Of a DNA stretch of 64,000 nucleotides, positions 24,491-59,918 are shown piece after piece. Source of the stretch: Scyliorhinus canicula (lineage: Eukaryota); assembly GCF_902713615.1 (NCBI RefSeq), contig NC_052156.1:41648776-41712775 (forward strand), given 5' to 3'. The notes under the pieces are model-generated. The model was not told where the DNA came from. It searched no databases and worked only from the letters and a program-made list of their open reading frames with translations. The position numbers and the translations under genes were made by a program. How positions within the stretch are numbered: position 1 is the stretch's first letter; each line of letters begins with the position of its first letter.

Positions 24491-27400
24491 ATGGCTAGTC
24501 GACGGGGGAGGGGGGCGGGACGCCCTCTGATTCAGTTGGTCACCTGGAATGCGAGAGGATTGAATGGGCCGGTGAAGCGGTCGAGGGTACTTGCCCATCT
24601 GAAGGGGCTAAAGGCAGATGTGGCAATGCTTCAAGAGACCCACCTGAAGGTGGCGGACCAGGCCCGTCTGAGGAAGGGATGGGTGGGGCAGATTTTCCGC
24701 TCTGGGTTGGATGTGAAGAACCGGGGAGTGGCGATTCTGGTGGGGAAAAATGTGTCGTTTGAGGCATCGGAGGTGGTGGCGGATAAGGGGGGTAGGTATG
24801 TTATGGTTAGGGGCAGGCTACAAGGAGAGAAGGTGGTACTTGCTAGTGTGTATGCCCCAAATTGGGACGATGCGGGCTTTATGAGGCGTATGTTGGGACG
24901 GGTCCCGGATCTGGAGGCGGGAGGTCTGATCATGGGGGGGACTTCAATACGGTGTTGGATCCTTCACTGGATCGGTCCAGTTCAAGGACGGGTAGGAGGC
25001 CGGCGGCGGCCAAGGTACTGAGAGGGTTTATGGACCAGATGGGTGGGGTGGATCCATGGAGGTTTGTGAGGCCGAGGGCACGGGAGTACTCTTTCTTCTC
25101 CCACGTACATAGGGTCTACTCTCGGATAGACTTCTTTGTGGTGAGTAGGGGACTGATTCCGAGAGTGGAGGAGGCCGAGTATTCGGCCATTGCAATCTCC
25201 GACCACGCTCCGCATTGGATGGAGTTGGAGATGGGGGGAGGTGCGGGACCAGCGCCCGTTGTGGCGGTTGGATGTGGGGTTGTTGGCGGAGGAGGAGGTG
25301 TGTAGGAGGGTCCGGGCAAGTATTGAGGGGTACCTCGAGGTGAATGATACGGGGGAGGTTCAGGTGGGGGTGGTCTGGGAAGCCTTGAAGGCAGTGATTC
25401 GTGGGGAGCTGATATCCATCCGGGCACACAGGGAGAGGAGCGAGAGGAGTGAGAGGTATAGACTGGTGGGAAAGATGCTGGAGGTAGACAGGAGGTACGC
25501 AGAGGCACCAGAGGAGGGACTGTTGGGGGAGAGGTGCAGCCTGCAGGCTAAATTTGATTTGCTGACCACTAGAAAGGCGGAGGCACAGTGGAGGAAGGCA
25601 CAAGGGGCAGTGTACGAACATGGTGAAAAGGCAAGTAGGATGCTGGCTCATCAGCTCCACAAGCGGGATGCGGCTAAGGAAATTGCTGGAGTGAGAGACA
25701 AGAGTGGGAATGTGGTGCGGAAGGGGGTAGAGGTGAATGAGGTCTTCAAGGACTTTTACGGGGAACTGTACCGGTCGGAGCCAACGGGGGAGAGGAGGGG
25801 AATGGAGAGGTTCCTCGACGGGCTTTCTTTCCCGAAGGTGCAGGAGGAGCAGGTGGAGGGGTTGGGTGTGCCGATTGAGCTGGAGGAGCTAGTTAAGGGG
25901 ATCGGGCAGATGCAGTCAGGGAAGGCACAGGGGCCGGATGGGTTCCCGGTGGAATTTTATAAAAAGTTTGTGGACCTAGTGGGCCCCTTGCTGGTGCGGA
26001 CACTTAATGAAGCGTGGGAAGGGGAGACTTTGCCCCCGACGATGTCGCGGGCGCTGATCTCGTTAATTTTAAAGAGGGACAAGGACCCCCAGCAGTGTGG
26101 TTCATACAGGCCCATATCTCTCCTCAACGTAGATGCCAAGGTGCTGGCAAAAATCCTGGCCACCAGGATAGAGGACTGCGTGCCAGGGGTTGTGCACGAG
26201 GACCAGACAGGTTTTGTGAAGGGAAGGCAGCTGAACACGAATGTGCGGAGATTGTTGAATGTCATCATGATGCCGGCGATTGAGGGGGAGGCAGAGATAG
26301 TGGTGGCGCTGGATGCGGAGAAGGCCTTCGATAGAGTGGAGTGGGGGTACTTATGGGATGTGTTGGGAAGGTTTGGATTTGGTGAAGGGTTCATTAGATG
26401 GGTATGGCTGCTATATGAGGCCCCGATGGTGTGCGTGGCCACGAATGGGAGTAGGTCGGAGTACTTCCGGCTTTACCGAGGGACCAGGCAGGGTTGCCCC
26501 CTGTCCCCCTGGTTGTTTGCACTGGCAATCGAGCCGCTGGCGATGGCGTTGAGGGATTCAGAGAGGTGGAGAGGTTTGGTGCGAGGTGGGGAGGAACATA
26601 TGGTGTCGTTGTATGCCGATGACCTGTTACTGTATGTGGCGGACCCGGTGGGAGGGATGCCGGGGGTGATGGAGCTGCTAGCTGAGTTTGGGACCTTTTC
26701 AGGTTATAAACTAAATTTAGGCAAGAGTGAGGTGTTTGTGGTGCACCCTGGAGACCAGGAGGAAGGAATTGGTAGGTTCCCGCTTAGGGGAGCTGGGGAG
26801 AGCTTTAGGTACATGGGGGTGCAGGTGGCCAGGGACTGGGGGACTCTTCACAAACATAGTTTCACCAGACTTGTAGATCAGATGGAGGAGGAGTTCAAGA
26901 GGTGGGACATGCTGCCATTGTCGTTGGCGGGGAGGGTGCAGTCCGTCAAAATGACGGTACTTCCGAGGTTCTTGTTCCTCTTTCAGTGCCTGCCCATCTT
27001 TATCCCCAGGGCCTTCTTTAGGAGAGTGACTAGCAGTATTTTGAGCTTTGTGTGGGCACATGGGACTCCGAGAGCGAAGAGGGTGTTCCTGGAGCGAGGG
27101 AGGGACAGAGGCGGGCTGGCGCTGCCCAACCTTCTGGGGTACTATTGGGCGGCCAATGTGTCAATGGTGCGTAAATGGGTGATGGAAGGGGGAGGGGCGG
27201 CGTGGAAAAGAATGGAGATGGCATCATGTAGAGGTACGAGCCTGGGTGCCATGGTAACGGCGCCGTTGCCGCTCTCCCCTAAGAGGTTTAACACGAGCCC
27301 GGTGGTGGCGGCGACCCTAAGAATCTGGGGACAGTGGAGACGGCATAGGGGGGAAACAGGGGGCTCGATGGAGGCTCCAGTGGGTGGCAATCATCGGTTC

Positions 27401-28281
27401 ATCCCAGGGAACAGGGATGGGAGATTTAGGGGGTGGCAAAGGGTGGGCATCAGTAAATTGAGGGACCTATTTGTTGGCGGGAGGTTTGCGGGCCTGGGGG
27501 AACTGGAAGATAAATTTGGGCTTCCCCAAGGGAACATGTTCAGATACTTGCAGGTAAAGGCGTTTGCTCGGCGACAGGTAAAGGGATTCCCTTTGCTGCC
27601 CTCGCGGGGGACGATGGACAGAGTGCTTTCGGGGGTGTGGGTCGGAGAGGGGAAGGTGTCTGACATCTATAAGGTAATGCAGGAGGTGGAGGAGTCGTCA
27701 GTGGTGGAGCTGAAGGCTAAATTGGAGGAGGAACTCGGGGAGCAGATAGAGGACGGGACTTGGGCGGATGCCTTGGAGTCAACTCTTCCTCCTCATGTGC
27801 GAGGCTTAGTCTCATCCAATTTAAGGTGCTGCACCGGGCCCACATGTCCGGGACTAGGATGAGTAGGTTCTTTGGGGGTGAGGACAGGTGCACCAAATGT
27901 TTGGGGAGTCCAGCGAACCACGCCCATATGTTCTGGGCATGCCCAGCACTGGAAGAATTCTGGAAGGGGGTGGCGGGGATGGTGTCGAGGGTGGTTGGAT
28001 CCAGGGTCAAACCAGGGTGGGGACTCGCAATTTTTGGAGTTGTGGTAGAGCCGGGAGTGCAGGAGGCGAAAGAGGCCGGTGTCCTGGCCTTTGCGTCCCT
28101 AGTAGCCCGGCGAAGGATCTTGCTGCAGTGGAAGGATGCGAGGCCCCCAAGTGTGGAGACCTGGATCAGTGACATGGCGGGATTTATAAAATTGGAAAGG
28201 GTCAAATTTGCCCTGAGAGGATCAATACAAGGGTTCTATAAACGATGGCAGCCTTTTCTGGACTTCCTGGCTCCAAGATAG
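24491..28281 (+). pseudogene. L1 ORF2p (APE endonuclease + RT), about 3 frameshifts
   Basis: TWNARGL, LQETH, YAPN, GGDFN, SRIDF, SDH; GPDG, YRPISLLN, LDAEKAFD, GTRQGCPLSP, YADD; frame breaks ~24940, ~25235, ~27775. Confidence 0.92.
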
Positions 28282-39773: not shown

Positions 39774-42700
39774 TCATACCTGACCGGTGCGACGGGGGGG
39801 GGGGGGGGGGGCAGGAAACCTACAGGTGCGGGGGTGCCGAGCGTGGGCAGGGGACTTATAGGCGCGGGGGTGCAGGGGGTTGGGTGGGGTGTAGTGTGAG
39901 GGGTATCTCGGCGGTGGTGGTGGTAGTGGTGGATCCTGCAGGCGCCAGGACCCGGAGGGAAACGGTGTCCTGATGGCCGCCGGGGTATTCAATGAAGGCG
40001 TATTGGAGGTTCTCTCTACTAGCGGGTCTGTTTTGTGTGTCCGGACCTGCTTCCGGAGGAGAACCGGGCCTGGTGTCCTCAACCAGGATGGGCGCGTAGC
40101 CCCCGTGGTAGTGCCCCTAGAGAAAACAAATAGTCGTTCGTGAGGGGTCTGGTAGGTGGCGGTGCATAGGAGGGACCTAATTGCATGGAGCGCGTCGGGG
40201 AGGACCTCCTGCGAATGGGAGGTCGGGAGATTCCTGGACCGGAAGGTCAGTAGGACGGTCTTCCAGACTGTTGCGTTCTCCCTCTCCACCTGCCCATTAC
40301 CCCTGGGGTTGTAGCTGGTAGTCCTGCTCGAGGCGATGCCCTTGTCGAGCAGGTACTGACGCAGCTCGTCGCTCATGAAAGACGAACCCCTGTCGCTGTG
40401 TACGTAGCTGGGGAAACCGAACACGGTGAAGATACTGTGCAGAGCTCTGATGACTGTGTGGGAGGTCATATCAGGGCACAGGATGGCAAAGGGGAAGCGG
40501 GAGAACTCATCGATGACGTTCAGAAAGTACACATTTCGATTGGTCGAGGGGAGTGGCCCTTTGAAATCGATGCTCAGGCTTTCAAAGGGCCGGGATGCCT
40601 TTACCAGGTGGGCCCTGTCTGGTCTATAGAAGTGCGGTTTGCACTCCGCGCAGATCAGGCAATCCCTGGTGATAGCTTTGACCTCCTCGGTGGAGAAAGG
40701 CAGATTTCGGGCTTTGACGTAGTGGACGAGCCGGTGACCCCCCGGGTGGCAGAGGTCATTGTGGATAGCCTTCAGACGGTCATCTTGCATGCTGGCGCAC
40801 GTGCCGCGGGACAGGGCATCTGGGGGCTCGTTGAGCTTCCCCGGTCGATATATGATATCGTAATTACAGGTGGAGAGTTCGATCCTCAACCGCAAGATTT
40901 TATCATTTTTAATTTTGCCCCTTTGCGAGTTGTCAAACATGAAGGCAACCGATCTTTGGTCGGTGATGAGGGTAAACCTCCTACCTGCGAGGTAGTGCCT
41001 CCAGTGCCGTACGGCTTCCACAATGGCTTGAGCTTCCTTTTCGACTGAGGAGTGTTTTTTTTTTTTAATTTAGATTACCCAATTATTTTTTCCAATTAAG
41101 GGGCAATTTAGCGTGGCCAATCCACCTACTCTGCACATTTTTGGGTTGTGGGGGCGAAACCCACGCAGACACGGGGAGAACGTGCAAACTCCACACGGAC
41201 AGTGACCCAGAGCCGGGATCGAACCTGGGACCTCAGCGCCGTGAGGCGGTTGTGCTAACCACTAGGCCACCGTGCTGCCCTTCGACTGAGGAGTGTTGAA
41301 GTTCCGAAGCGGAGAGGGTTTGGGAGAAGGCGGCGACTGGTCTCCCTGCCTGATTTAGAGTGGCGGCGACAGCGACCTCTGAGGTGTCGCTCTCCACTTG
41401 AAAGGGGACGGATTCATTCACCACCCGCATGGCGGCTTTGGCGATGTCCTACTTGATGCAGTTGAAGGCCTGGCGGGCCTCAGCCGACAGTGGGAAGAGT
41501 GTGGTCTTAAATAGTGGGCGGGCTTTGTCCGCATACTGGGGGACCCACTGGCGTAATAAGAGAAGAATCCCAGGCACCTCTTGAGGCCCTGGGACAATGA
41601 GGGGGAGGGAGTTGTAAGAGGGGGCATACGGTCCGGGTCGGGGCCCAGGACTCCGTTTTCCACGACATAGCCAAGGATGGCTAGTCTAGTTGTACGAAAA
41701 AAGCATTTCTCCGTATTATAGGTGAGATTGAGTTTCTGGCCGGTTTGGAGACATCAGTGGAGGGTGGCGTCATGGTCCTGCTGATCATGGCCGCAGATGG
41801 TGACATTGTCCAAGTACGGAAAGGTGGCCCGCAGCCCGTACTGGTCCACCATTCGGTCCATTGTTCGTTGGAACACTGAGACCTCATTCGTGAAGCAAAG
41901 GGAACCCGGAGGAAATGGAAGAGGCGGCCATCTGCCTCGAACGCCGTGTAGTGGCGGTCCTCCGGGCGGATTGGGAGCTTGTGATAAGCAGACTTCAGAT
42001 CCACCGTGGAGAATATGCGGTACTGGGCGATCTGATTAACCATATCTGCAATTCTGGGGAGGGGGCACGCATCGAGGTGCGTGAATCGGTTAATGGTTTG
42101 GCTATAATCAACCACCATTCTGAACTTTTCCCTGGTCTTGACGACCACCACTTGAGTTCTCCAGGGGCTGTTACTGGCCTCTATGACTCCCTCACGTAGG
42201 AGCCGCTGGACTTCGGTTCTAATAAATACCCTTTTCTGCAGGCTATACCACCTGCTGCGAGTGGCTACGAGTTTGCAGTTCGAAGTGAGATTAGTGAAGA
42301 GTGGAGGGGGGTCGATTTTTAGTGTCGCTAGACTGCAGATAGTGAGTGGAGGTAGGGGTCCGCCGAAGCTGAGTGTGAGGCTCTTGAGATTACATTGGAA
42401 GTCGAGTCCAAGTAAGAGTGGGGCGCAGAGGTCGGGGAGTACGTACAGCTGGAAATTAGAGTAGCTGGCGCCCTGGATCGTTAGGGTCGCGACGGTGCGC
42501 CCTTGTATGTGGATTGAGTGTGAGCCCGAGGCGAGGGAGATAGTTTGCCATGCAGGGAAGATAGGGAGTGAACAACGCCTTACCAGGTCAGGATGTACGA
42601 AGCTCTCGGTGCTCCCGGAGTCGAAGAGGCACGGTGTCCTGTACCCATTGATTTTAACGGACATCATCGAGCTCTGGAGGTGCTTCGGACGCGACTGGTC

Positions 42701-43033
42701 CAACGTGACTGCGTTGAGTTGCGGGTAGTCGGCGGCTCGATCAGCTGTGCTGGAGTGGCCCCGTGATGACTGTCCGCTAAGGTCGTAGTCGTCGAGGTTC
42801 GGTTCGGGTGATGGCCAAGATGGCGGTCCCCGTTGATCGCACGTGGCGGGTGCTGGAGAAGATGGCGTCCAAGTTGGCCGCCCCATGGATCGCAAGTGGC
42901 GGGCGGCGAGGAAGATGGCGTCCAAGATGGCGGCCCCCATGACTCGCACGTGGCCGGCCGCGTGGAGGAGGGTTGCCAAGATGGCGGCCCCCATGAGTTG
43001 CACATGTCGGGTGGAGGCGGAGTCGGCAGACAC
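39774..43033 (-). pseudogene. pol: Gypsy Pol (PR, RT, RNase H, IN), interrupted by a SINE
   Basis: LFDSGS, LLGLDF, SPW, RMVVDY, FSTVDLKSAY, YLDN, HxxxxH..CxxC, IDFKGP, HSDRG, GNGQVER. Confidence 0.92.
41057..41280 (-). mobile_element. HE1-type SINE inside the Gypsy RNase H region
   Basis: TSD TTCGACTGAGGAGTGTT at ~41040-41056 and 41281-41297. Confidence 0.9.
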
Positions 43034-43847
43034 ACTGTAGCATTAGGGGGCCTGCGGGCCTGTGAGTTTGGGAGGCGAGTGCTCTGGACTGCGAGGGAGT
43101 TTGGAGTTTTTGATTTTGCCAGGCATACTCGGGCATAGTGTCCTTTGCGACCGCAGCTGCTGCAGGTCGCGTTGCGGGCCGGGCAGTGCTGCCGTGGGTG
43201 TTGGAGCTGGCCACAAAAATGGCACGCTGGCGCTACATAGTGGGTGGGTGGCCGCGCAGCGCAGGCCTGGGCCAGTCGCTGGTCAGGGGCCCACGATGGG
43301 GTCGCTTGGTCAGTGGGGAATGAGTTCAAACTGCGGAATGCGACCTCCATAGTCGTAGCTAACTCTACATTGCCCTCCAAGTTCTGGGCCCCTTTTTCAA
43401 GCAATCGCTGGCGCACATAGTTGGACCTGAGCCCTGCAACGTATACATCACGGACAGCGAGTTCCATATGCTGGGAGGCTGTTACAGCCTGAAAATTGCA
43501 GTCCCGAGCAAGGGCTTTTAAATCGCGCAGAAAGGCTTCCAGCGACTCGGCGGGGCGCTGGCAGCGGGTCATGAAAACGTGCCACGCGTAGACCTTGTTA
43601 ATCGGTCGCACGTACAGTCGGTCGAGCATGGCCAGGGCCTCGGTATATGAAGTGGTACAATTAAGTTGCGTAGAGATACGATGGCTCACCCTTGCGTGCA
43701 GTAGGCTGTGTTTCTGCTCCTCTGTAGTCTCGGAAGTGCTAGATTCAGCCAGGTCGGCCTTGAAACATTGAAGCCAGTGTAGGAAGATTTCCTTCGACTC
43801 TGCAGCCGGTCGAGTTCTCGTCGATCAGGTTTGAGGGCTGATTCCAT
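42664..43847 (-). pseudogene. gag: Gypsy Gag
   Basis: MESALKPD.., RQRLLEKG, CHFCGQLQHPRQHCPARNATCSSCGRKGHYARVC. Confidence 0.85.
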
Positions 43848-49812: not shown

Positions 49813-51015
49813 ATGTGCGGCCTGGTCGGCAGCGCCGTCCGCTCGCCGCCCTCAGCCGGTTTACAGCGTTTTGCCGCCCGCTGTTCCTCGAGGTCGGGGC
49901 CGGCGGCCATGCAGACGGCAGTGGTCCGCTGCGTCCCCACCGAGACCAAGCTGACCATCTCGCTGCGGCTGGGCCCCGGCAAGGGAGGGCAGCGGCACCT
50001 GCAGCGGGAGCAGAGCGAGAGCCTGCGGACCGCGCTCGGCCGTATCGCCCACAACCTGCTGAAAGCGCAGGCCAAGCCCAGGAAAGACCGGAAGGCGGCC
50101 CAGGCTGAGGCCCCGGCTCAGGCCCCGCCGGTTGTTCTCTACCGGGGAGAGCAGCCGGTGCCCGGGGACACGAGCAACGCCGAGGCCTGGCAGGACGGGG
50201 CCGTCTTACAGGTGGGGGAGACCCGGTACCGGGTGGAGCGGAACCCGCCCACCCTGACCCAGCTCCGGTTACCCGGCTCCATCCTGGTCGGCTTCCCGCT
50301 CTGCGCCACGGTGGAGCTGGAGTTCGGGGAGGCCTCGCACTCGCTGTTCGAGTGGCTGAGGGAGGAGGGCGGGGGCTGGGAGCCGGTGGCTAGCGGCCGG
50401 GTCTTCACCCCGGGCAACGGCCACATCGGCCTCAAGCTCAAGCTGAGGTGTCAGCCGGGCGACGGGCGGCGCTTCGGGGAGGCGGTGGAGCTGGAAAGCG
50501 GCGGGCCGGTGGAGGCCGGCCCGGGCACTTGTACTTTCGACGGCCGCCAGAAGTTCACCCGCCAGAACCCGGAGGAGCCGCTGCTCCGGGTGGTTTCCTA
50601 CAACATCCTGGCCGATGCGTACGCTCAGACCGAGTTCTCCAGGACTAACCTGTACCCTTACTGCCCGCCCTATGCACTCGAGGTCGACTACCGGCAGAAT
50701 CTCATCAAGAAAGAGCTGGGCGGCTACAACGCCGACATCATCTGTCTCCAGGAGGTGGACAAGAACGTGTTCACCAACAGCCTGGCCCCGGCCCTGGATG
50801 CGTTGGGCTTTCGGGGAGTGTTTCGAATTAAGGAGAAGCAACATGAAGGCCTCGCAACTTTCTTCAGAGACTCGAAGTATCGGCTGATAAGTCAGCACGA
50901 TGTGGCCTTTAGCGAAGCTCTAGCTTCAGATCCCTTACACGTCGAGCTTTTGGAGAAGATTTCTGCAAACCCCAACGTTAAAGAAAAGGTGCTGCAAAGA
51001 TCAACCGCTTTCCAG
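49813..51015 (+). CDS. PDE12: 2',5'-phosphodiesterase 12, exon 1
   Basis: AVVRCVP.E.KL, NAEAWQDGAVLQ, VEAGPGTCTFD, VSYNILAD.YAQTEFSR..LYPYC, ICLQEVD; donor CAG|GTACT. Confidence 0.97.
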
Positions 51016-51220
51016 GTACTTTGAAAGATAATTTTGGGCGGCTTGCACCCCTGCCAAATTGCCTCTGTTGGAGGTTTCGATTTTGGGGGATATAGGACAT
51101 TCTGTGCTGGGAAAATAGTATTATTAATTTTTCCTGGGAGAAAAATATTGGTACAATCAACTCGCTATGATTTTGGGCACAGTAAGAAGTCTTACAACAC
51201 CAGGTTAAAGTCCATTCTCA

Positions 51221-51265
51221 TCATTCACCTGAGGAAGGAGCAGTGCTCCGAAAGCTAGTGTTTGA
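51221..51265 (+). ncRNA. Minimal type I hammerhead ribozyme motif (Penelope-type) within inverted-repeat element 51180-51304
   Basis: cac-CTGAGGA-a-GGAGC-agt-GCTCC-GAAA-GCTA-gtg. Confidence 0.72.
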
Positions 51266-52018
51266 AGCAAACCTAGTGGACTTTAACCTGATGTTGTAAG
51301 ACTTTTTGGGGGCAGCTTTTTGCTTTAAAATTTAAGTGTTAATGAACATTGCAGCAAAGTGAAAATGTTGTGTTAATAAAATTGGTTAAATAACCAGCGC
51401 AGTGTTATAATGCTGTACGTTATGTTGTGAAGATGAATGTCCATTTGGGAACTTAAAGAATACACAAGATATGTTCCATTTTCAAAATGTTGGGGTAGCA
51501 AACTACATGATAATTATACAGCCGAAATCCCATTCAACAGTTTACCGGAAATTATTCGGGTCTGTAAGAATAGAGTGACTGAAAATCCTGACATTTTTTA
51601 GTTGATCAGAGAGGATTTGTGAATGGTTGTCATGCCTGACAAACTTCAAGTGATTTTTTTTTGGAGAAAGTGACTGAAGCAATGGCCCAGGGGAATGTCT
51701 TTGGATGTTGTTCATGCTACTTCCAGAAGCCATTTGACAAGGTTGCTCATAAAATACTCTTAAAGCTGAAGTTCACACAGAATTGAAAGCAAATTATTGA
51801 GTTGGTTAGAATTGAAAGCAAATTATTGAGTTGGTTAGGAAATCTGCTGCAGTAAGTGACTTAGCTGGGATAATGGTCAATGACTCTAATTGGCAGTATG
51901 TGACTAGTGGTATTCCACAAGGGTCTGTATTTGGTCCTCGACTATTCACCGCATTTATTAGTGACCTAAATGATAGAAAGGAAAGCCACATGTCCAGGTT
52001 TGCTGATGACATAAAGAT

Positions 52019-52104
52019 CTCCTGAAGAAGGAGCCGTGCTCCGAAAGCTCGTGTTTGAAACAAACCTGTTGGACTTTAACCTGGTGTTGTAAGACTTCTT
52101 ACTG
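52019..52104 (+). ncRNA. Second Penelope-type hammerhead-containing insertion
   Basis: CTGAAGA-a-GGAGC-cgt-GCTCC-GAAA-GCTC-gtg; 11-bp TSD GACATAAAGAT (52008-52018 and 52105-52115) inside a CR1 FADD motif. Confidence 0.68.
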
Positions 52105-52439
52105 GACATAAAGATAGACATCATTATCAGCAGTGTAAATGGAAACATAAAGTAATAAATTGATATTAATAGATTAAGAATGGTCGTTTGGTGTACCGAA
52201 CTTGAGTATTGCTGAAAAAAGACAGGTGGAAGCTTTTCATCTTGCCCTCATCAGGATATTTGTACGAGTACCAAATGTAAAGGGAACAACAGTTTTTAGA
52301 TTTAGTAAGGGTCTTGCTGATTCCTTTATTTCCCCTTTCTTTATTTTTGCCGTTATCATTTCTGATCTGTGGATGCTTAATGGACATGTATCTGTAAGTC
52401 AATCAGAAGCGAGAAGGAGGAATTCAAGAAGTTGCAACA

Positions 52440-53291
52440 CAGTATATGATGCTGCTAGCTTTGGACAGTAGGACCCAGACATTTTGGCACCCGCGAGATG
52501 GGGTGGGACTCGGTTCAATTAGAACATTACATAGAACATTACAGCGCAGTACGGGCCCTTCGGCCCTCTATGTTGCGCCGACCCGTGAAACCATCTGAAG
52601 CCTATCTGACCTACACTATTCCATTTTCATCCATATGTCTATCCAGTGACCACTTAAATGCCCTAAAATTGATTGGCTGGTGGCCATTGAATTGCCCAAA
52701 AGGCCATATTCTGTGAGTAGCAGGCGGGGTTGATTGTGTCCTGCCTAATGGAATAATTTTCAGAGACTCCCTCTGTTCTGAAACTGGACACACAGGGGAA
52801 ATGATCTACTCTTCTCGCTCTCTCTCCAGAAAGGCTGTGGTTTTATATGCTTCTGAACCTACAGTTAACCTGAATGAATCAATCTACCATGAAACCTTAT
52901 AGGTTACAAACTCAGACCTGGATCTGAAAGCTTACTTTGAAGGAACGTCTGCTTAAAAACTACCAACTGACTCTTTTTTTTTTTCTCTTACTTATTTTTT
53001 TGCACCCATGTCCTCCCCTCTTATGTTTCTGTCTTGTGTGTGTAGAGGGTGGGGGCAAGTTGTGGAAATAGATAATAGTTAACCAGTAGCTGCATATTTC
53101 ATTATAGTTCTTGTTATACATAAAAAGTAATTGTGTTTAAATTTACAAACCTAGTGACTGTAATTATTGGGCAACCAAGGACCAAAGACTTCAGATATTT
53201 TTCTAAGAATGATTGGTTAATTCAATTGTATTCTGACTCCAGGTCAAGGGGGATTGGAATTGACTGCGCCCTAGCCCAGGGTGTCGTAACA
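52440..53291 (+). mobile_element. Probable solo LTR, with a CR1 tail inserted ~52520-52665
   Basis: Ends ..gtcgtaaca; LTR-like composition; left boundary and TSD not resolved. Confidence 0.4.
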
Positions 53292-54594
53292 ACTTTCTGA
53301 GAAGAGAGTACTGATTGGATTGGCAAGTGGACTCTGATTGGTAGAGACGTTGCCATGGAGAAAGCTTTGACGTCTCCATTCAGCCATACTCAAAATTAAG
53401 AATGGACAAAGCTATGACAAATTTGAAGTCATCCTCGTCTATGATCCAGGGGAGAGCAGAATTGGAAAGCTAGAAACAGTGGAGGTGCAAAGAGATCTAG
53501 ACCCAGGTATATAAATCATTAAAATGCAATGAACAGGTACAGGAAGTAATCAAAAAGGCTAGTAAGAATGTAAAAATAGCAACTAGTGTAAGCCAAATGG
53601 ACCTTTCAGCCTGCTTCTCTAACATCGGAATTGATCTTCACCCTCCATTCCATTCTCTTCATATCCTTCAATTCCGCTAGAGTCCAAAAACCTATCTGTT
53701 GCAGCCATGAATATATTTGACAACAGAGCATCCACAGGTGGAGAATTCCAAAATTCATAACCACCATGGTAAAACTCCCTCTCCATAATTATTTGCTATA
53801 CATGCATGTATTTTTTTGTAATAGCGGTTAGCACTGCTACCTCACAATTTTCAATTCCAACTTTGGGTGACTGCATCAAGTTTGCACATTCTTCCCGTGT
53901 CTGCATGGGTTTCTTCCGGGTGCTCTGGTTTCCTCCCACAGTCCAAATATGTGCAGGTTAGGTGGATTGGTCATGCTAAATTGTCCTTTAATGTCCAACG
54001 GTTATGTGAGGTTACTGGGTTTTGGGGATAGATGGAGGCTCATTCAGAGGTTCGGTGCAAACCTGATGGACCAAATGGCCTCCTTCTGCACTGTAGTGAT
54101 TCTGTTCTATTCTATAAATACATAAGCAAAAGATTTATGATAAACTTAAACACTGATTTGGCCTCAGCTGGACTATTGTGACCAATTCAAGGAACCACAT
54201 GTAGAGTTAACATGAGAGGCAAGGTTACATGGACAGGGCTGGGGAGTGGGCCTAGGTAGGGTGCTCTTTCAGAAGGTCGTTTTAGACTCCAGCTGAATGG
54301 CCTACTTCTGCACTGTAGGGATTCTATGATATCTGATGGTCTAGAATACGAGTTATGCTACAGCCTGAATTGACCACAGCTGGAGTGCAGTGAGTGGTTT
54401 TGAACATTAGACCTTAGAAAGGATATATTTGTCTTAGATGGAATGGATCATAGATTAACTGGAATGACACCTGCACTCCAAGGATTAAATCGCCAGGAGA
54501 GATTACACTAACTAAGGTTGTGGCCATTGGAATTTTGAAGGTTATAGGATGATGTGATCATATTAAGATATTAAGGGGAACTGATAGAGTAAAG

Positions 54595-55460
54595 CGTAGA
54601 CTACAGAAGGGAGATAAATCACTTGGTTGCATGGTGTACCGAACACAACCTCTTTCTAAATGTCGGAAAGACCAAGGAACTGATCATCGACTTCAGGAAG
54701 CATAGCACGGCTCACACTCCCGTCTGCACCAATGGCTCCAAAGTGGAGATGGCCGATAGCTTTAAGTTCCTGGGGATCACCGTCACCAACAGTCTGTCCT
54801 GGTCCACTCATGTTGATGCAACAGTAAAGAAAGCCCAACAATGTCTCTACTTCCTACGGAAGCTAAAGAAATTTGGCATGTCTGCATCGACTCTCTCAAA
54901 CCTCTACAGATATGCCATAGAGAGCATCATATCCGGCTGCATCACTGCTTGGTATGGCAGCTGCTCGGTCCAAGATTGCAAGAAACTGCAGACTGTGGTG
55001 AACTCAGCCCAACGCATCACACGAGCTTGCCACCCCACATTGATTCTGTATACACCTCCTGCTGCCTCAGGAAGGCAGACAGCATTATCGGAGACCCCTC
55101 CCACCCAGGCACTACCTTCTTCCAGACCTTTCCATCAGGCAGAAGGTACAGAAGTCTGAAGACCTGCACATCCAGACAGGAATAGTTTCTAGCCCACAGC
55201 TACAAGACTTCTCAACGACTCCCTCTCTGACTGATCTGTTACCTGTAAGAACACTATACACAACGCCCTATGCTGCTCTTGCTCATGTATTTGCTTTGTT
55301 TGGCCCCTAGTTCTGCATTGTAACCAATCACTGTCGATGTACCATTTGTCCATGTACTTTGTTGATTATTCTTTTTTGGCTACTATGTACGTACTGTGTA
55401 TGTTCCCTTGGCTGCAGAAAAATACTTTTCACTGTACTTTGGTACATGTGCCAAAATCGA
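54595..55460 (+). mobile_element. Rex1/Babar-like LINE 3' fragment
   Basis: WCTEHNLFLNVGKTKELIIDFRK, FKFLGIT, IESIISGCITAWYG. Confidence 0.87.
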
Positions 55461-55848
55461 AATAAATTGAGTAAGTATAGATAAATTACATTAGTTGGTT
55501 ACCCAGCATTGGGAGCATAGGCTAAAAGTTAGAGCCAGACCTTTCAGGCGCAAAGTTATGGAAAATCTTTACATGCGAAACATGGTGAAAGTTTGGATCT
55601 ATCTTTTGAAAACGTCAATTGATTCTAAATTGGTTATTACTTTTCAATCTAGGGTTAATACATTTGGTTGTGTTAACCAAAAATATTGAGGGATGTGGAA
55701 CACATCGTTGGTGTGAGTTGCCAATCACCACAATCCCGTTGAATAGCATAACAGGCTCGAACGGCTAAATGAGCTATTTCTGCTGGTATTTGAGCAATTC
55801 AGTGTTTACTGTACATTATTGATCTGAAACACTGCTATTTTTATTTAG

Positions 55849-55927
55849 GTTTGTGTACTTCAGTCCCTCAAAGATTCATCAAAGAAGTTGTGTGTTGGTA
55901 ATACTCATCTTTACTGGCACCCCAAAG
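55849..55927 (+). CDS. PDE12: PDE12 exon 2
   Basis: ttag|VCVLQSLKDSSKKLCVGNTHLYWHPK G|gtaaat; 79 bp; frame is consistent with exons 1 and 3. Confidence 0.96.
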
Positions 55928-56002
55928 GTAAATGTTATATATATACCGTATATAAAATTATCTGGTGTTTCCTTTATTTTCCCCCCTCCCATTTTTAGAT
56001 AT

Positions 56003-56520
56003 ATTAAAAAAAATTTTTTTAGAGTACCCAATTAATTATTTCCAATTAAGGGGCAATTTAGCGTGGCCATTCCACCTACTCTGCACATCTTTAGGTTGTG
56101 GGGGCGAAACCCATGCAAACATGGGGAGAATATGCAAACTCCACACAGACTGTGACTCCGAGCCGGGATCGAACCTGGGACCTCGGCACCGTGAGGCAGC
56201 AGGGCTAACCCACTGTGCCACCGTGCTGCCCAGGCTGCGATACATTTCTACATAAGCATCATATTGATCAAAGGTCTACAATCACCTGGAAGCCAGTGCA
56301 ATTGGAAGGAAACCTGCTACAATCATGGGGAGATATATTTCAATGCCATTGAACTATAAATCATAATATGCAGAAATAATACAGCTGAAAAGAAAAAGGC
56401 AGTGGAGTTGCATTGGTTAAAGAGGAAATTAACACAAAGCGAGGAAGGATATTAGCTCCGACAATGTCACCTCGGTGTCGTGAGGCAGCAGTGCTAACCA
56501 CTACGCCACCATGCTGCCCC
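56003..56520 (-). mobile_element. HE1-type SINE carrying an internal templated insertion
   Basis: TSD TTTTTAGATAT at 55992-56002 and 56522-56532; internal 56233-56467 matches 60608-60842. Confidence 0.85.
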
Positions 56521-57499
56521 GTTTTTAGATATGCATGTAGAATCTGTTTGGCATGAACTTCCCCATTAAAAATGGTTAATTTGACTCTAATCATGAGGCT
56601 GACTTGCTGTTCGATGATGGATTGTGTTGTAGTTGAAGATCTAAAACTTGTTTGAAATCTAAAATAACTACATTTTCATCAGTGTTATCGTTTGATTTGT
56701 TTATTTTCTGATACCAGAATAGCACAAACAAAAAATGCACTTGGGCCTATATGTTTCTTGTGTGTGTTGCAATCACAGGAGACGTCACTAACTTTTAAAA
56801 ATAAATTTGAAACCCCAGTTATTAACTGAAAGAATTATGCCACAAGATTTCACATTTTAAATAAAAACTTCAAAAGGGTTAAATGAAGCAAATAATACTA
56901 ACTTAACACTAGATTTCTTAAACATACTTTACAAACCAAAACTGAACAGAATACTCTTGTTTTACTTTTATTTCCACCCAAGAGTTCCACTATACTTTAC
57001 TTGATCTTGAGGACTCTTTCACTTTTCCTGGGACTAAACCAGACTGTGCCACAGCTCTCAGAAATTCACTTTAATTCTTCTCCATTACTCTGAGGTATGA
57101 GATTTCTTGGGGTCCTTCAATATGCATTTGGCTAGGTAAACCCCCCAACTCTACTTTGTACCTCCCTAGCTGAAGCATGAGCCTCACTGCGTTACTGCTT
57201 CATGACTTCATCAGAAACAACTCTGGGCTTCTGATCACCTTCTGCTCCTGGCCCACAGTTCATAGCAGATTCTCTCTCTACATTTGTTCAACTGCTCCAG
57301 CCCCAGACATCAACTAATGGTTTCTGTGAGAAGTCACCCAAATAAAACCCCAAAACGAAGAAATAAAATCCCCCTGCAATCTCTCCATGGCAATGTGACA
57401 CATGGGATGTCATAGATAGAGATTTAAACCAATGATCTCCAATTCCCAAACCTTCCCTTTGTTCTGGGAAGCCAAATTAATGAATTTCAATATTCTGTC

Positions 57500-58270
57500 A
57501 ATTTCCCCATCTCCATTGTATCTTTCTGAGGATGCAACCTTCTTCTTTTTCCTCAACTGACGATTTCACCCCACTATGGTTGACAGGGTCCTCAACTGTG
57601 TCTGACCCATTTCCGCACTCGTCCCTTCCCTTTGTGGAACTGATACGGTTCCACTCATATCCACTTTCCGCTCCTTCAACCTCCACAGCATGATGCCACC
57701 ACCAAACACATCTTCTTCCTTTGAACATTCCGAAGGGACAGTCCCCTCCGCACCATCCTGGTCCACTCCCAAATCATCCCCAACACCATGTCCCCTTCCC
57801 ATGCAATCGCAGGGGATGTAATGCTTGCCCTCTCCTCAACGTCAAAAGACCCAACATCCTTTCCAGGTGAAATAATAACAAAGACGAAGAACAAAGACAA
57901 TACAGCACTTGAATAGGCCCTTCAGCCCTCCAAGCCTGTACCGGTCATGATACCAACCTTTGCCAAAACCCTCAGAAAGAACAAAGAACAATATAGCATA
58001 TGACTTTTACTTATTTCAATTTAATATACCGTATTTGTTGCTCACAACATGGTCTCCTCTACATTGAAGAGAATAATCTACTCAGTCCACAAGCATCATC
58101 TTAAACTTCCAGTTGCTTGCCAGTTGAGATCACTCCCATGCTCTTGTGCTCATGTTCCTGTCCTCTACCTGCTACAATGTTCCTTTGAACTTTACGCAAG
58201 CTCGAGGAACAGCACCTTATTTTCCAAATAGGCACTTTACAGTCTTCTGGACTCAACATTCAGACCATGA
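57500..58270 (+). mobile_element. Decayed Penelope-like fragment
   Basis: Homologous in layout to 29600-30440 (LIYRICCSQHGLLYI); decayed hammerhead-like end at ~59294-59330. Confidence 0.6.
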
Positions 58271-59475
58271 ACTCTGTCTCCCATTTTGATTTTTTTTTTG
58301 CCATGTGCTAATTTGAAACTTGTTTTTCATGTTTGTGCTTTTGGACAGACCGATTCATTATTCTGACACTCGTTCTGGATTAATGCATTGTTTCTACTAC
58401 AACCATTATCACTCCCTTTGCCTTTTGTTCCATGACACTTTGTTATTTAATCTCTCCCATCCTCAACCCTATTCAACCTTTCCTTTTGTTATTCTCTGCC
58501 CCTGTGTGCCTGAACTGCAGTGTGTCTTTATACAATGGGCAAATGACCACAAGTTGTTTTGTACAATAATATACTTTCATTTACTATCACACAATTGTTA
58601 CTGTTAATCAATCACACACACATGCAAGTTGAACTCTAAGCTAATACACACAAGGCTTTAACTGAACTTCAAGTGACTAGCAAGTACTAGGCAGATATGG
58701 CCTTATTTGGAGTCCGCAGTCTGGCAGTGTAGGAAGTCTGTTGCTGGTTGTTATTCTCTTTAGCTCTGGTCCTTCCATCGATGGCGTGGATGGTCTTCCT
58801 CTTCGGCCGGTGAAGGGTCACCGTTGGTTGCTGTCGAGAGAGAGAGTGGTGGGCTGCGCAGCACCTTTTATCCCCAGGAGTTTTTGCATCCTTTTGGGTG
58901 TTGAAGGCCCAATCAATCTATTAGGGCTTGATCACCTGATGGATAAGGTCCAATTAAGATCCACCGCCTTGATGGCAGGGCGTGCCCCTACTGCCCATGT
59001 CCGTTGGTGTCCGAGGAACGTAGGCCTTCGCAAATAAGGAAAACAGACGCCACTAAGTCAGCTATTTTATGCCGATTTCCATTTAAGCCCGTTGTCCCAG
59101 GATGGCTTCTTAATGGCCTTTTTTCTGGGCTGTTAGCAAAAGCCTGGGCTGCAGCTTTTTGTTTATTTGCAATCGACAGCCTGTCTGTACCTAAACTTGG
59201 CCACTTTCCCCAGCGTCCTTTGCCGCATGCCATTTCAGGTGGCCACACCCCCTTGCAACGCATATCTACATCACATTTCTACCCTCAATCAGTTCTGAAA
59301 ATGTCATCTTTGACTTGAAACGTTAGTTTTGTTTCTCCACAGATGCAGTTGAGTATTTCCAGCACTTCCTGTTTTTACGCCAGTCCCAATCTGTTGGATG
59401 TGATTTCAGATCAGTTTTGCCGAAACCTATATTAATTTATATTGCAACGCTAAATAGATTGATTTTTTTTTTCAG

Positions 59476-59918
59476 GAGGACACATTCGCCTTGTTCAGAT
59501 AGCAATTGCTTTTCGTCACCTTCAGCGAGTTACAGCAGAGATGTATCCTGCTACACCACTCATTTTTTGTGGTGACTTCAACAGCACCCCAAACTCAGGC
59601 TTGTATGAGTTTGTGACCAAGGGACACATATCTGCTGATCACCCTGACTGGACGTCAAATGGTGAGGAGGAACGATGCAACATGTCCCTTTCCCAGTTAT
59701 TTAAACTAAAAAGTGCTTGTGGAGAACCTGACTACACAAATTATGTAGGCGGCTTCCAAGGTTGCCTGGACTACATTTTCATGGATATGAACACGTTTGA
59801 AGTTTTTCAGGTTATTCCTTTTCCAAGTCATGAAGAAGTCACCTGCCATTTGGCTCTGCCAAGTGTTTCCCACCCATCAGATCATATTGCACTTATCTGT
59901 GATTTGAAATGGAAATAA
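59476..59918 (+). CDS. PDE12: PDE12 exon 3
   Basis: ttcag|GHIRLVQ..CGDFNS..YTNYVGGF.GCLDYIF..PSDHIALICDLKWK*; total CDS 1725 nt = 574 aa. Confidence 0.97.

Follow-up and report, generated by a model that had tools for sequence, protein, structure and literature searches.

The window analysed here, a 64-kb stretch of the Scyliorhinus canicula genome, contains the gene for PDE12 (2',5'-phosphodiesterase 12), whose annotated span of 10,106 bp runs from 49813 to 59918. Exon 1 matches S. canicula PDE12 with 100% identity and ends at a splice donor at 51016|51017; the open reading frame that covers it (49813-51024) encodes the PDE12-like N-terminal domain and the beginning of the EEP nuclease domain recognised by Pfam. 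The frame of exon 2, ...GNTHLYWHPKG, was found at about 55849-55926, a piece of 26 amino acids that matches no Pfam family. Intron 1 holds two short copies of a repetitive element, referred to below as copy 1 and copy 2, each with a predicted minimal hammerhead motif. All features are collected in Table 1.

Table 1. Features of the PDE12 locus in the 64-kb window (TSD, target-site duplication; a dot marks features given without strand)
Feature	Position	Strand	Description
PDE12 exon 1	49813-51016	+	Pfam PF21171 PDE12-like_N (E 1.6e-26) and Exo_endo_phos
PDE12 intron 1	51017-55848 (3' end approximate)	+	Contains both copies
Copy 1 TSD, left	51171-51179	.	TTTTGGGCA; read from the sequence, borders ambiguous by a few bases
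Copy 1, inverted arm	51180-51214	-	Last 35 nt of the element, ending at its 3' terminus
Copy 1, direct part	51215 to about 51307	+	Holds the upstream sequence of the family, its hammerhead motif and its 3' region
Minimal hammerhead motif 1 (predicted)	51229-51260	+	Sequence and pattern search; CUGAGGA, extra A, GGAGC-AGU-GCUCC, GAAA, GCU, A17
Copy 1 TSD, right	51304-51314	.	Two extra G, making the duplication imperfect
LINE reverse-transcriptase fragment hosting copy 2	51831-52018, resumes after 52105	+	Pfam RVT_1
Copy 2 TSD, left	52008-52018	.	GACATAAAGAT; direct repeat, 11 bp, 100% identical
Copy 2	52019-52104	+	5'-truncated element copy of 86 nt, beginning 3 nt ahead of the hammerhead core
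Minimal hammerhead motif 2 (predicted)	52022-52053	+	Sequence and pattern search; CUGAAGA, extra A, GGAGC-CGU-GCUCC, GAAA, GCU, C17
Terminal stem-loop	52089-52102	+	GUAAG-ACUU-CUUAC; predicted hairpin, 2 nt before the element's 3' end
Copy 2 TSD, right	52105-52115	.	Same 11 bp
Last PDE12 exon	59541-59918	+	Matches the C-terminal part of Exo_endo_phos

The two motifs belong to a pair of plus-strand repeats, 51225-51307 and 52018-52100, each 83 nt long, 89% identical and spaced 793 nt apart. A preliminary description of this DNA had placed both in intron 1 of PDE12, in the sense orientation, and inspection of the sequence together with a pattern search confirms their positions and orientation. 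In hammerhead numbering, each motif runs from C3 (51229 in copy 1, 52022 in copy 2) to A9, followed by an unpaired extra A (51236 and 52029), helix II and G12-A13-A14, and both core boxes, CUGANGA and GAAA, are present in the two copies. Helix II is the same in both: five base pairs (GGAGC/GCUCC) with a loop of 3 nt, closed by G10.1-C11.1. Positions A15.1-G15.2-C16.2-U16.1 read AGCU, the palindrome that the preliminary description had likewise seen in place of helix III, and neither copy has a helix III. H17, in neither copy a G, is A at 51257 and C at 52050, which places the predicted cuts at 51257|51258 and 52050|52051, or 241 nt and 1,034 nt past the donor of exon 1. It is followed directly in both copies by GUG, the 3' arm of stem I. 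Helix I of copy 1 consists of three base pairs (CAC/GUG), a 2x2 U.U loop and three further base pairs (UCA/UGA); the extended stem of the earlier account thus stands with the U.U loop between its two parts. The 5' arm of stem I in copy 2 is damaged, as had been noted: it reads CUC, pairs with GUG as C-G, U.U and C-G only, and owes its shortness to the 5' truncation of the copy. Judged from their sequence, the two motifs are supported as predicted Penelope-type minimal type I hammerhead motifs carrying the AGCU palindrome where helix III would be.

Copy 2 is the simpler of the two insertions. It is enclosed by a perfect direct repeat, 52008-52018 and 52105-52115, in agreement with the 11-bp target-site duplication first reported for it, and it sits within a fragment of LINE origin. 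The RVT_1 match of this fragment (E 2.1e-06, 28.0 bits) lies just below the Pfam cut-off of 29.6 bits, and its reading frame, ...FADDIKI, is broken at the point where copy 2 begins. A contig from a second species joins 52007 straight to 52105 and so presents the empty site of copy 2; this contig may be the ortholog or possibly a paralogous LINE copy, and in either case copy 2 is a secondary insertion. Copy 2 looks young, since it is near the subfamily consensus and its target-site duplication is perfect. The terminal stem-loop close to its 3' end is a candidate for the start site of reverse transcription.

Copy 1 is arranged head to head. Its inverted arm shows 100% complementarity with 52070-52104, where copy 2 has its 3' end; its direct part stops about 7-8 nt before the terminus present in copy 2. 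Both outer borders of copy 1 are 3' ends of the element, the left one coinciding exactly with the terminus of copy 2. The inverted-repeat cassette recognised in the preliminary description is borne out, with arms at 51184-51214 and 51277-51307 that are 31 nt long and 94% complementary. The duplication at the borders, TTTTGGG(GG)CA, is imperfect and 9-11 bp long. Copy 1 carries private changes at 51267, 51275, 51276 and 51291, and the upstream consensus of the family, ...CATTCA(C), is present in loose read ends.

Both strands of the window were scanned with a minimal-hammerhead descriptor of our own that requires a helix I of at least 3 bp. Copy 1 was the only match, copy 2 failing solely on helix I, and no match occurred in 300 simulated 64-kb windows. 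As the copies share ancestry, they count as one family-level event in this estimate and not as two independent ones. The preliminary description had proposed a search with the Rfam hammerhead models, and this check failed: Hammerhead_1, HH9 and HH10 gave no match at gathering score over the 64 kb and none at E<=10 over 51100-52200. Such a failure is expected of motifs that have no helix III; it is nevertheless counted as a failed check. Sub-threshold Rfam matches to miRNA precursors were taken as an inverted-repeat artefact of the 31-bp hairpin of copy 1. A type III hammerhead in which a GUUUG/CAAAC hairpin would serve as closed helix I was rejected, as the bases that follow, CUAGUGGA or CUGUUGGA, are unlike CUGANGA. 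Three different probes found no further copies of the family in the window.

Elsewhere in the genome the family is abundant. In a DNA-type run of S. canicula (X6), about 19,800 contigs were placed on the element, with a summed contig depth of 6e5 to 2.3e6 over it and of about 5 on the unique flanks; summed contig depth is not a copy number but indicates a family of very many copies. A second species (X18) is similar. From the depth ratios it is roughly estimated that same-strand neighbours within 1 kb would be expected many times per genome. The 3' end of the family occurs in two forms. Some copies end at 52103 or 52104, like both copies in PDE12 intron 1, and 150 RNA reads ending at 52103 have heterogeneous flanks. 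Many others run past 52104 into a common stretch of at least 30 nt, a continuation shared by the loose ends of 500 further RNA reads and seen reversed before 51177. Variants reaching at least 10% within the motifs were listed for reads at least 85% alike, 27 weaker entries lying outside the list, and the listed ones fall at N7 (52026), in loop 2 (51242, 51244 and 52035) and at H17 (51257 and 52050), where A or C occurs and never G. None of these listed variants touches an invariant core position or the stem of helix II. The main variant of the family has an extra A after GUG, giving a helix I of 4 bp; copies 1 and 2 are without this A. Within the window, only a LINE-type reverse transcriptase and a gypsy-type pol were found, and no open reading frame for a Penelope reverse transcriptase or GIY-YIG domain. 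This short family is linked to an autonomous Penelope-like element (PLE) by inference from the motif and from the signatures of insertion.

The insertions appear to be restricted in their distribution. Intron 1 of the whale shark can be aligned from about 51330 on and is without 51017-51313, hence without copy 1, and 31.5 kb of the whale-shark PDE12 locus contain no copy of the family. No conservation in other species was seen, copy 1 being absent from the whale-shark intron and copy 2 facing an empty-site contig in the second species. Contigs from further S. canicula samples span the left border of copy 1 and that of copy 2, and others lead out of each copy into the flank on its right. Both insertions are therefore not confined to the reference, though contigs of this kind cannot show absence.

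The closest published relatives are the minimal hammerheads of PLEs, whose hallmarks, including the extra nucleotide, G10.1-C11.1 and the palindromic 15.2-16.2, were defined by Cervera & De la Pena (2014, PMC4209133). These motifs share with both copies the type I topology, the CUGANGA and GAAA cores, G10.1-C11.1, a helix II extended beyond the usual 4 bp, the absence of helix III, the palindromic 15.2-16.2 and a short helix I. Single motifs left by truncated elements are scattered in their thousands in fishes, coelacanth, frog and reptiles (PMC4209133); some lie close together on opposite strands, and their dispersion resembles that of the catshark family. Two differences are seen. Helix I comprises about 4-5 bp in the published motifs and 3 bp before an internal loop here, and the published motifs lie in the pLTR of an element encoding reverse transcriptase and GIY-YIG, of which the window has no such reading frame. 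No chondrichthyan family of PLE minimal hammerheads, the catshark's included, was found in the literature searched.

The mode of insertion can be compared with that of Poseidon, a PLE of Anolis carolinensis that has been tested biochemically, whereas the shark family is known here from sequence. The reverse transcriptase of Poseidon initiates cDNA synthesis at an internal position, close to a stem-loop that lies downstream of the hammerhead. An optional tail of 30-40 bp, carried by some of the genomic copies, is explained by two start sites next to each other, and the protein cleaves and extends both strands of the target DNA (Frangieh et al. 2024, PMC11167929). The catshark family would have the same layout, its hammerhead lying at a fixed short distance upstream of a putative internal start near a stem-loop. 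This mechanism fits a terminus that is fixed at 54 nt beyond the cut, just after the GUAAG/CUUAC hairpin, and the extreme 5' truncation of copy 2, and the optional tail, likewise carried by a fraction of the copies, fits the continuation of at least 30 nt past 52104. The head-to-head form of copy 1 would follow from the cleavage and extension of both target strands (PMC11167929). The distance from cut site to terminus, 54 nt here, is roughly 85-90 nt in the anole element, and the catshark copies have no visible start codon at stem II. The hammerhead of the anole element is inactive without the element's protein, and RNA-seq ends are absent at its cut site (PMC11167929); no pile-up of ends was seen at the catshark sites either.

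Two other classes of ribozyme show some likeness. Non-LTR retrozymes and the hammerheads of amphibian satellites (PMC7229834; bioRxiv 10.64898/2026.07.22.740005) are comparable to the catshark motifs in being of type I; they have a weak helix III, act as dimers and are probably derived from or mobilised by PLEs. Unlike the catshark motifs, they form head-to-tail tandem repeats of about 150-450 bp with circular RNAs and efficient dimer cleavage. At PDE12, unique sequence and the LINE fragment occupy the 793-nt spacing, and the two copies have separate target-site duplications. Domesticated intronic ribozymes (the amniote HH9 and HH10 in RECK, CTCL and DTNB, and the HDV-like ribozyme of CPEB3) share with the motifs their place on the sense strand of an intron. 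Each of them stands alone, folds stably, is active as a monomer and has long been conserved at its orthologous position, whereas the PDE12 motifs have no helix III, do not match HH9 or HH10 in Rfam and are not conserved.

Taken together, these observations very probably reflect two independent, neutral insertions into PDE12 intron 1 of the 3'-terminal part of an abundant Penelope-like family of S. canicula. The family motif would lie about 54 nt upstream of the start of cDNA synthesis, for which reason even extremely 5'-truncated copies would retain it. Copy 2 would have arisen by simple target-primed insertion of a 5'-truncated copy of 86 nt, with an 11-bp duplication, into an older LINE fragment. 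In the case of copy 1, both target strands would have been nicked and used as primers, leaving a 3' end of the element at each border. In the parent element, the literature suggests that the hammerhead presumably assists in processing the multimeric transcript of the element itself, probably aided by the element's protein. At PDE12 the motifs would be passengers; monomers cannot form helix III, and copy 2 lacks the 5' arm of stem I. The neutrality of both insertions is itself inferred, and a host function for PDE12 is not indicated.

The preliminary description had gone further and suggested that the two copies could form an intramolecular double hammerhead, paired through AGCU, that would cut the nascent PDE12 pre-mRNA about 240 nt past the first donor and could influence splicing or RNA output. 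Helix III of such a structure joins A15.1 of one motif to U16.1 of its partner, and each cut site takes its helix I in trans from the core and 5' arm of the other copy. The site at 51257 would need the 5' arm of copy 2, which is truncated to CUC, and so is left without a helix I. The arm of copy 1 could supply one, but only for the site at 52050. The catalytic cores and the stems of helix II are intact in both copies, both are sense to the pre-mRNA, and intact cores in same-strand proximity are what would also be expected of a functional pair. Two structures dominate the equilibrium fold of 51150-52120: a perfect long-range duplex of 35 bp that joins 51180-51214 to 52070-52104, and an extended duplex formed by the two copies. 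In this ensemble the trans helix I between the 5' arm of copy 1 and the 3' arm of copy 2, joined by the 35-bp duplex, reaches a probability of about 0.6. Against this, the inter-copy AGCU/AGCU helix III has a probability of about 0.001 and helix II of at most 0.01, and forcing the double hammerhead raises the energy by 17.2 kcal/mol over the optimum; nearest-neighbour models omit tertiary contacts, which makes these values negative evidence short of proof. The hairpin of copy 1 alone, 31 bp long, has an energy of -65.7 kcal/mol (z -8.2), and since transcription reaches copy 2 only 790 nt further on, copy 1 should settle into this hairpin beforehand. One oligo-dT RNA run shows zero depth over the unique intron, and no pile-up of read ends was seen in it at 51258 or 52051 among several hundred family reads crossing each site; these reads derive from both strands, and the result is weak, an oligo-dT library being a poor fit for nascent-RNA fragments that begin with 5'-OH. 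Nor does the literature agree with the premise of efficient dimer cleavage by PLE minimal hammerheads: no activity was recorded for monomers and a low one for dimers and trimers, mostly at non-physiological Mg2+ (PMC4209133), or else the protein is needed (PMC11167929), and efficient dimer cleavage belongs to the amphibian retrozyme hammerheads, a different class (PMC7229834). There is a precedent in Cpeb3 for an intronic ribozyme tuned to splicing (PMC10919898); orthologous conservation is absent from the PDE12 motifs. With one site deprived of helix I and with folding and RNA reads speaking against it, the cutting of PDE12 RNA by such a pair is highly improbable. Slightly less credible still is the narrower version in which the 35-bp duplex places the core and 5' arm of copy 1 on the cleavage site of copy 2, turning the two independently inserted Penelope tails into a composite hammerhead whose cut at 52050|52051 lowers or times PDE12 mRNA; if true, it would mean a ribozyme assembled by chance from transposon debris about 1 kb into intron 1.

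A milder alternative is that the motifs are cleaved incidentally and at a low level, with the help of a Penelope protein or in trans with transcripts of the family, and with no consequence for PDE12. Family RNA from both strands in the RNA-seq data and the published, protein-assisted activity of a PLE hammerhead (PMC11167929) speak for it, but the 54 nt past the cut may omit the region bound by the protein (the anole element needs about 172 nt of its reading frame), no ends were found at the predicted sites, and helix I has merely 3 bp before its internal loop. This is unlikely, though less so than the double hammerhead. That the motifs merely resemble hammerheads by chance would agree with the silence of the Rfam models even at E<=10. 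The empty simulations argue that the motif is not a product of chance, the extra nucleotide, G10.1-C11.1 and the palindrome are all present beyond the core boxes, and the listed variation of the family sits at positions that are free in hammerheads, so that a chance origin is extremely improbable and ranks lowest among these alternatives. The reading as two neutral Penelope-like insertions is accordingly preferred; the preliminary description was accurate in its observation and right in its family assignment, while its functional inference is not supported.

As found, the two copies are a matter of routine repeat annotation, by which the known Penelope minimal hammerheads gain a family from a cartilaginous fish. 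They also offer two clean examples of Penelope insertion, one with extreme 5' truncation and one head to head with 3' ends at both borders. Wider significance would arise only if dispersed motifs were shown to cut host transcripts. Given the high copy number, many introns should carry sense-strand pairs, and the informative question is thus a genome-wide one, reaching beyond a single locus: orientation bias, the mapping of ends, and the decay of cores relative to that of flanks across the copies of the family. The PDE12 gene itself spans 10.1 kb in the catshark and 6.5-6.7 kb in Cetorhinus maximus and Mustelus asterias, a larger size that is consistent with lineage-specific insertions into its introns.

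The two Penelope-like insertions with minimal hammerhead motifs in PDE12 intron 1, copy 1 (51180-51307) and copy 2 (52019-52104), are linked by a perfect 35-nt inverted repeat, of which each insertion holds one arm, with a separation of 855 nt. Pairing of these arms has a probability of about 1.0 in equilibrium folding and dominates the predicted structure of the intron RNA, in which it would constitute a potential long-range dsRNA. The hairpin of copy 1 also matched miRNA precursor families in Rfam, all below their gathering scores, and these matches were read as a by-product of its 31-bp inverted repeat.

In the one oligo-dT RNA-seq run considered (51030-52300), RNA of the abundant S. canicula family to which both copies belong is present on both strands, at a depth of about 40 to 680 per strand, and unique PDE12 intron sequence has zero reads in the same run. 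The family repeat is co-transcribed widely at other genomic places.

PDE12 introns show fast turnover of content among sharks, with gene spans varying by species in the four compared. Upstream of copy 1, a 12-nt direct repeat, AT(A/G)ATTTTGGGC, encloses a unique 127-nt segment, possibly inserted at an earlier time or duplicated locally; in a cross-species intron comparison, whale-shark intron 1 lacks both this segment and copy 1. The intron further contains a perfect tandem duplication of a 29-nt unit. One contig from X6, a DNA-type public sequencing run of S. canicula, crosses this region minus one unit, reflecting either polymorphism or collapse in the X6 assembly.

A domain search of ORFs found no GIY-YIG ORF within the 64-kb window. 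It identified two other retroelement ORF regions, a gypsy-type pol and an 890-aa ORF that looks LINE-like.

Features of the window and PDE12 spans in sharks
Feature	Coordinates	Strand	Size, score or content
Inverted-repeat arms	51180-51214; 52070-52104		
12-nt direct repeats	51028-51039; 51167-51178		
127-nt segment with repeats	51028-51178		
29-nt tandem duplication	51779-51836		
mir-2363 match	51182-51309		37.8 bits (gathering score 90)
mir-3015 match	51182-51309		34.1 bits (gathering score 59)
PDE12, S. canicula (catshark)	49813-59918	+	10.1 kb
PDE12, Mustelus asterias			6.7 kb
PDE12, Cetorhinus maximus			6.5 kb
PDE12, Rhincodon typus			11.5 kb
890-aa ORF	25190-27862	+	full RVT_1 domain
Gypsy-type pol	39774-43689	-	protease, RT, RNase H, integrase
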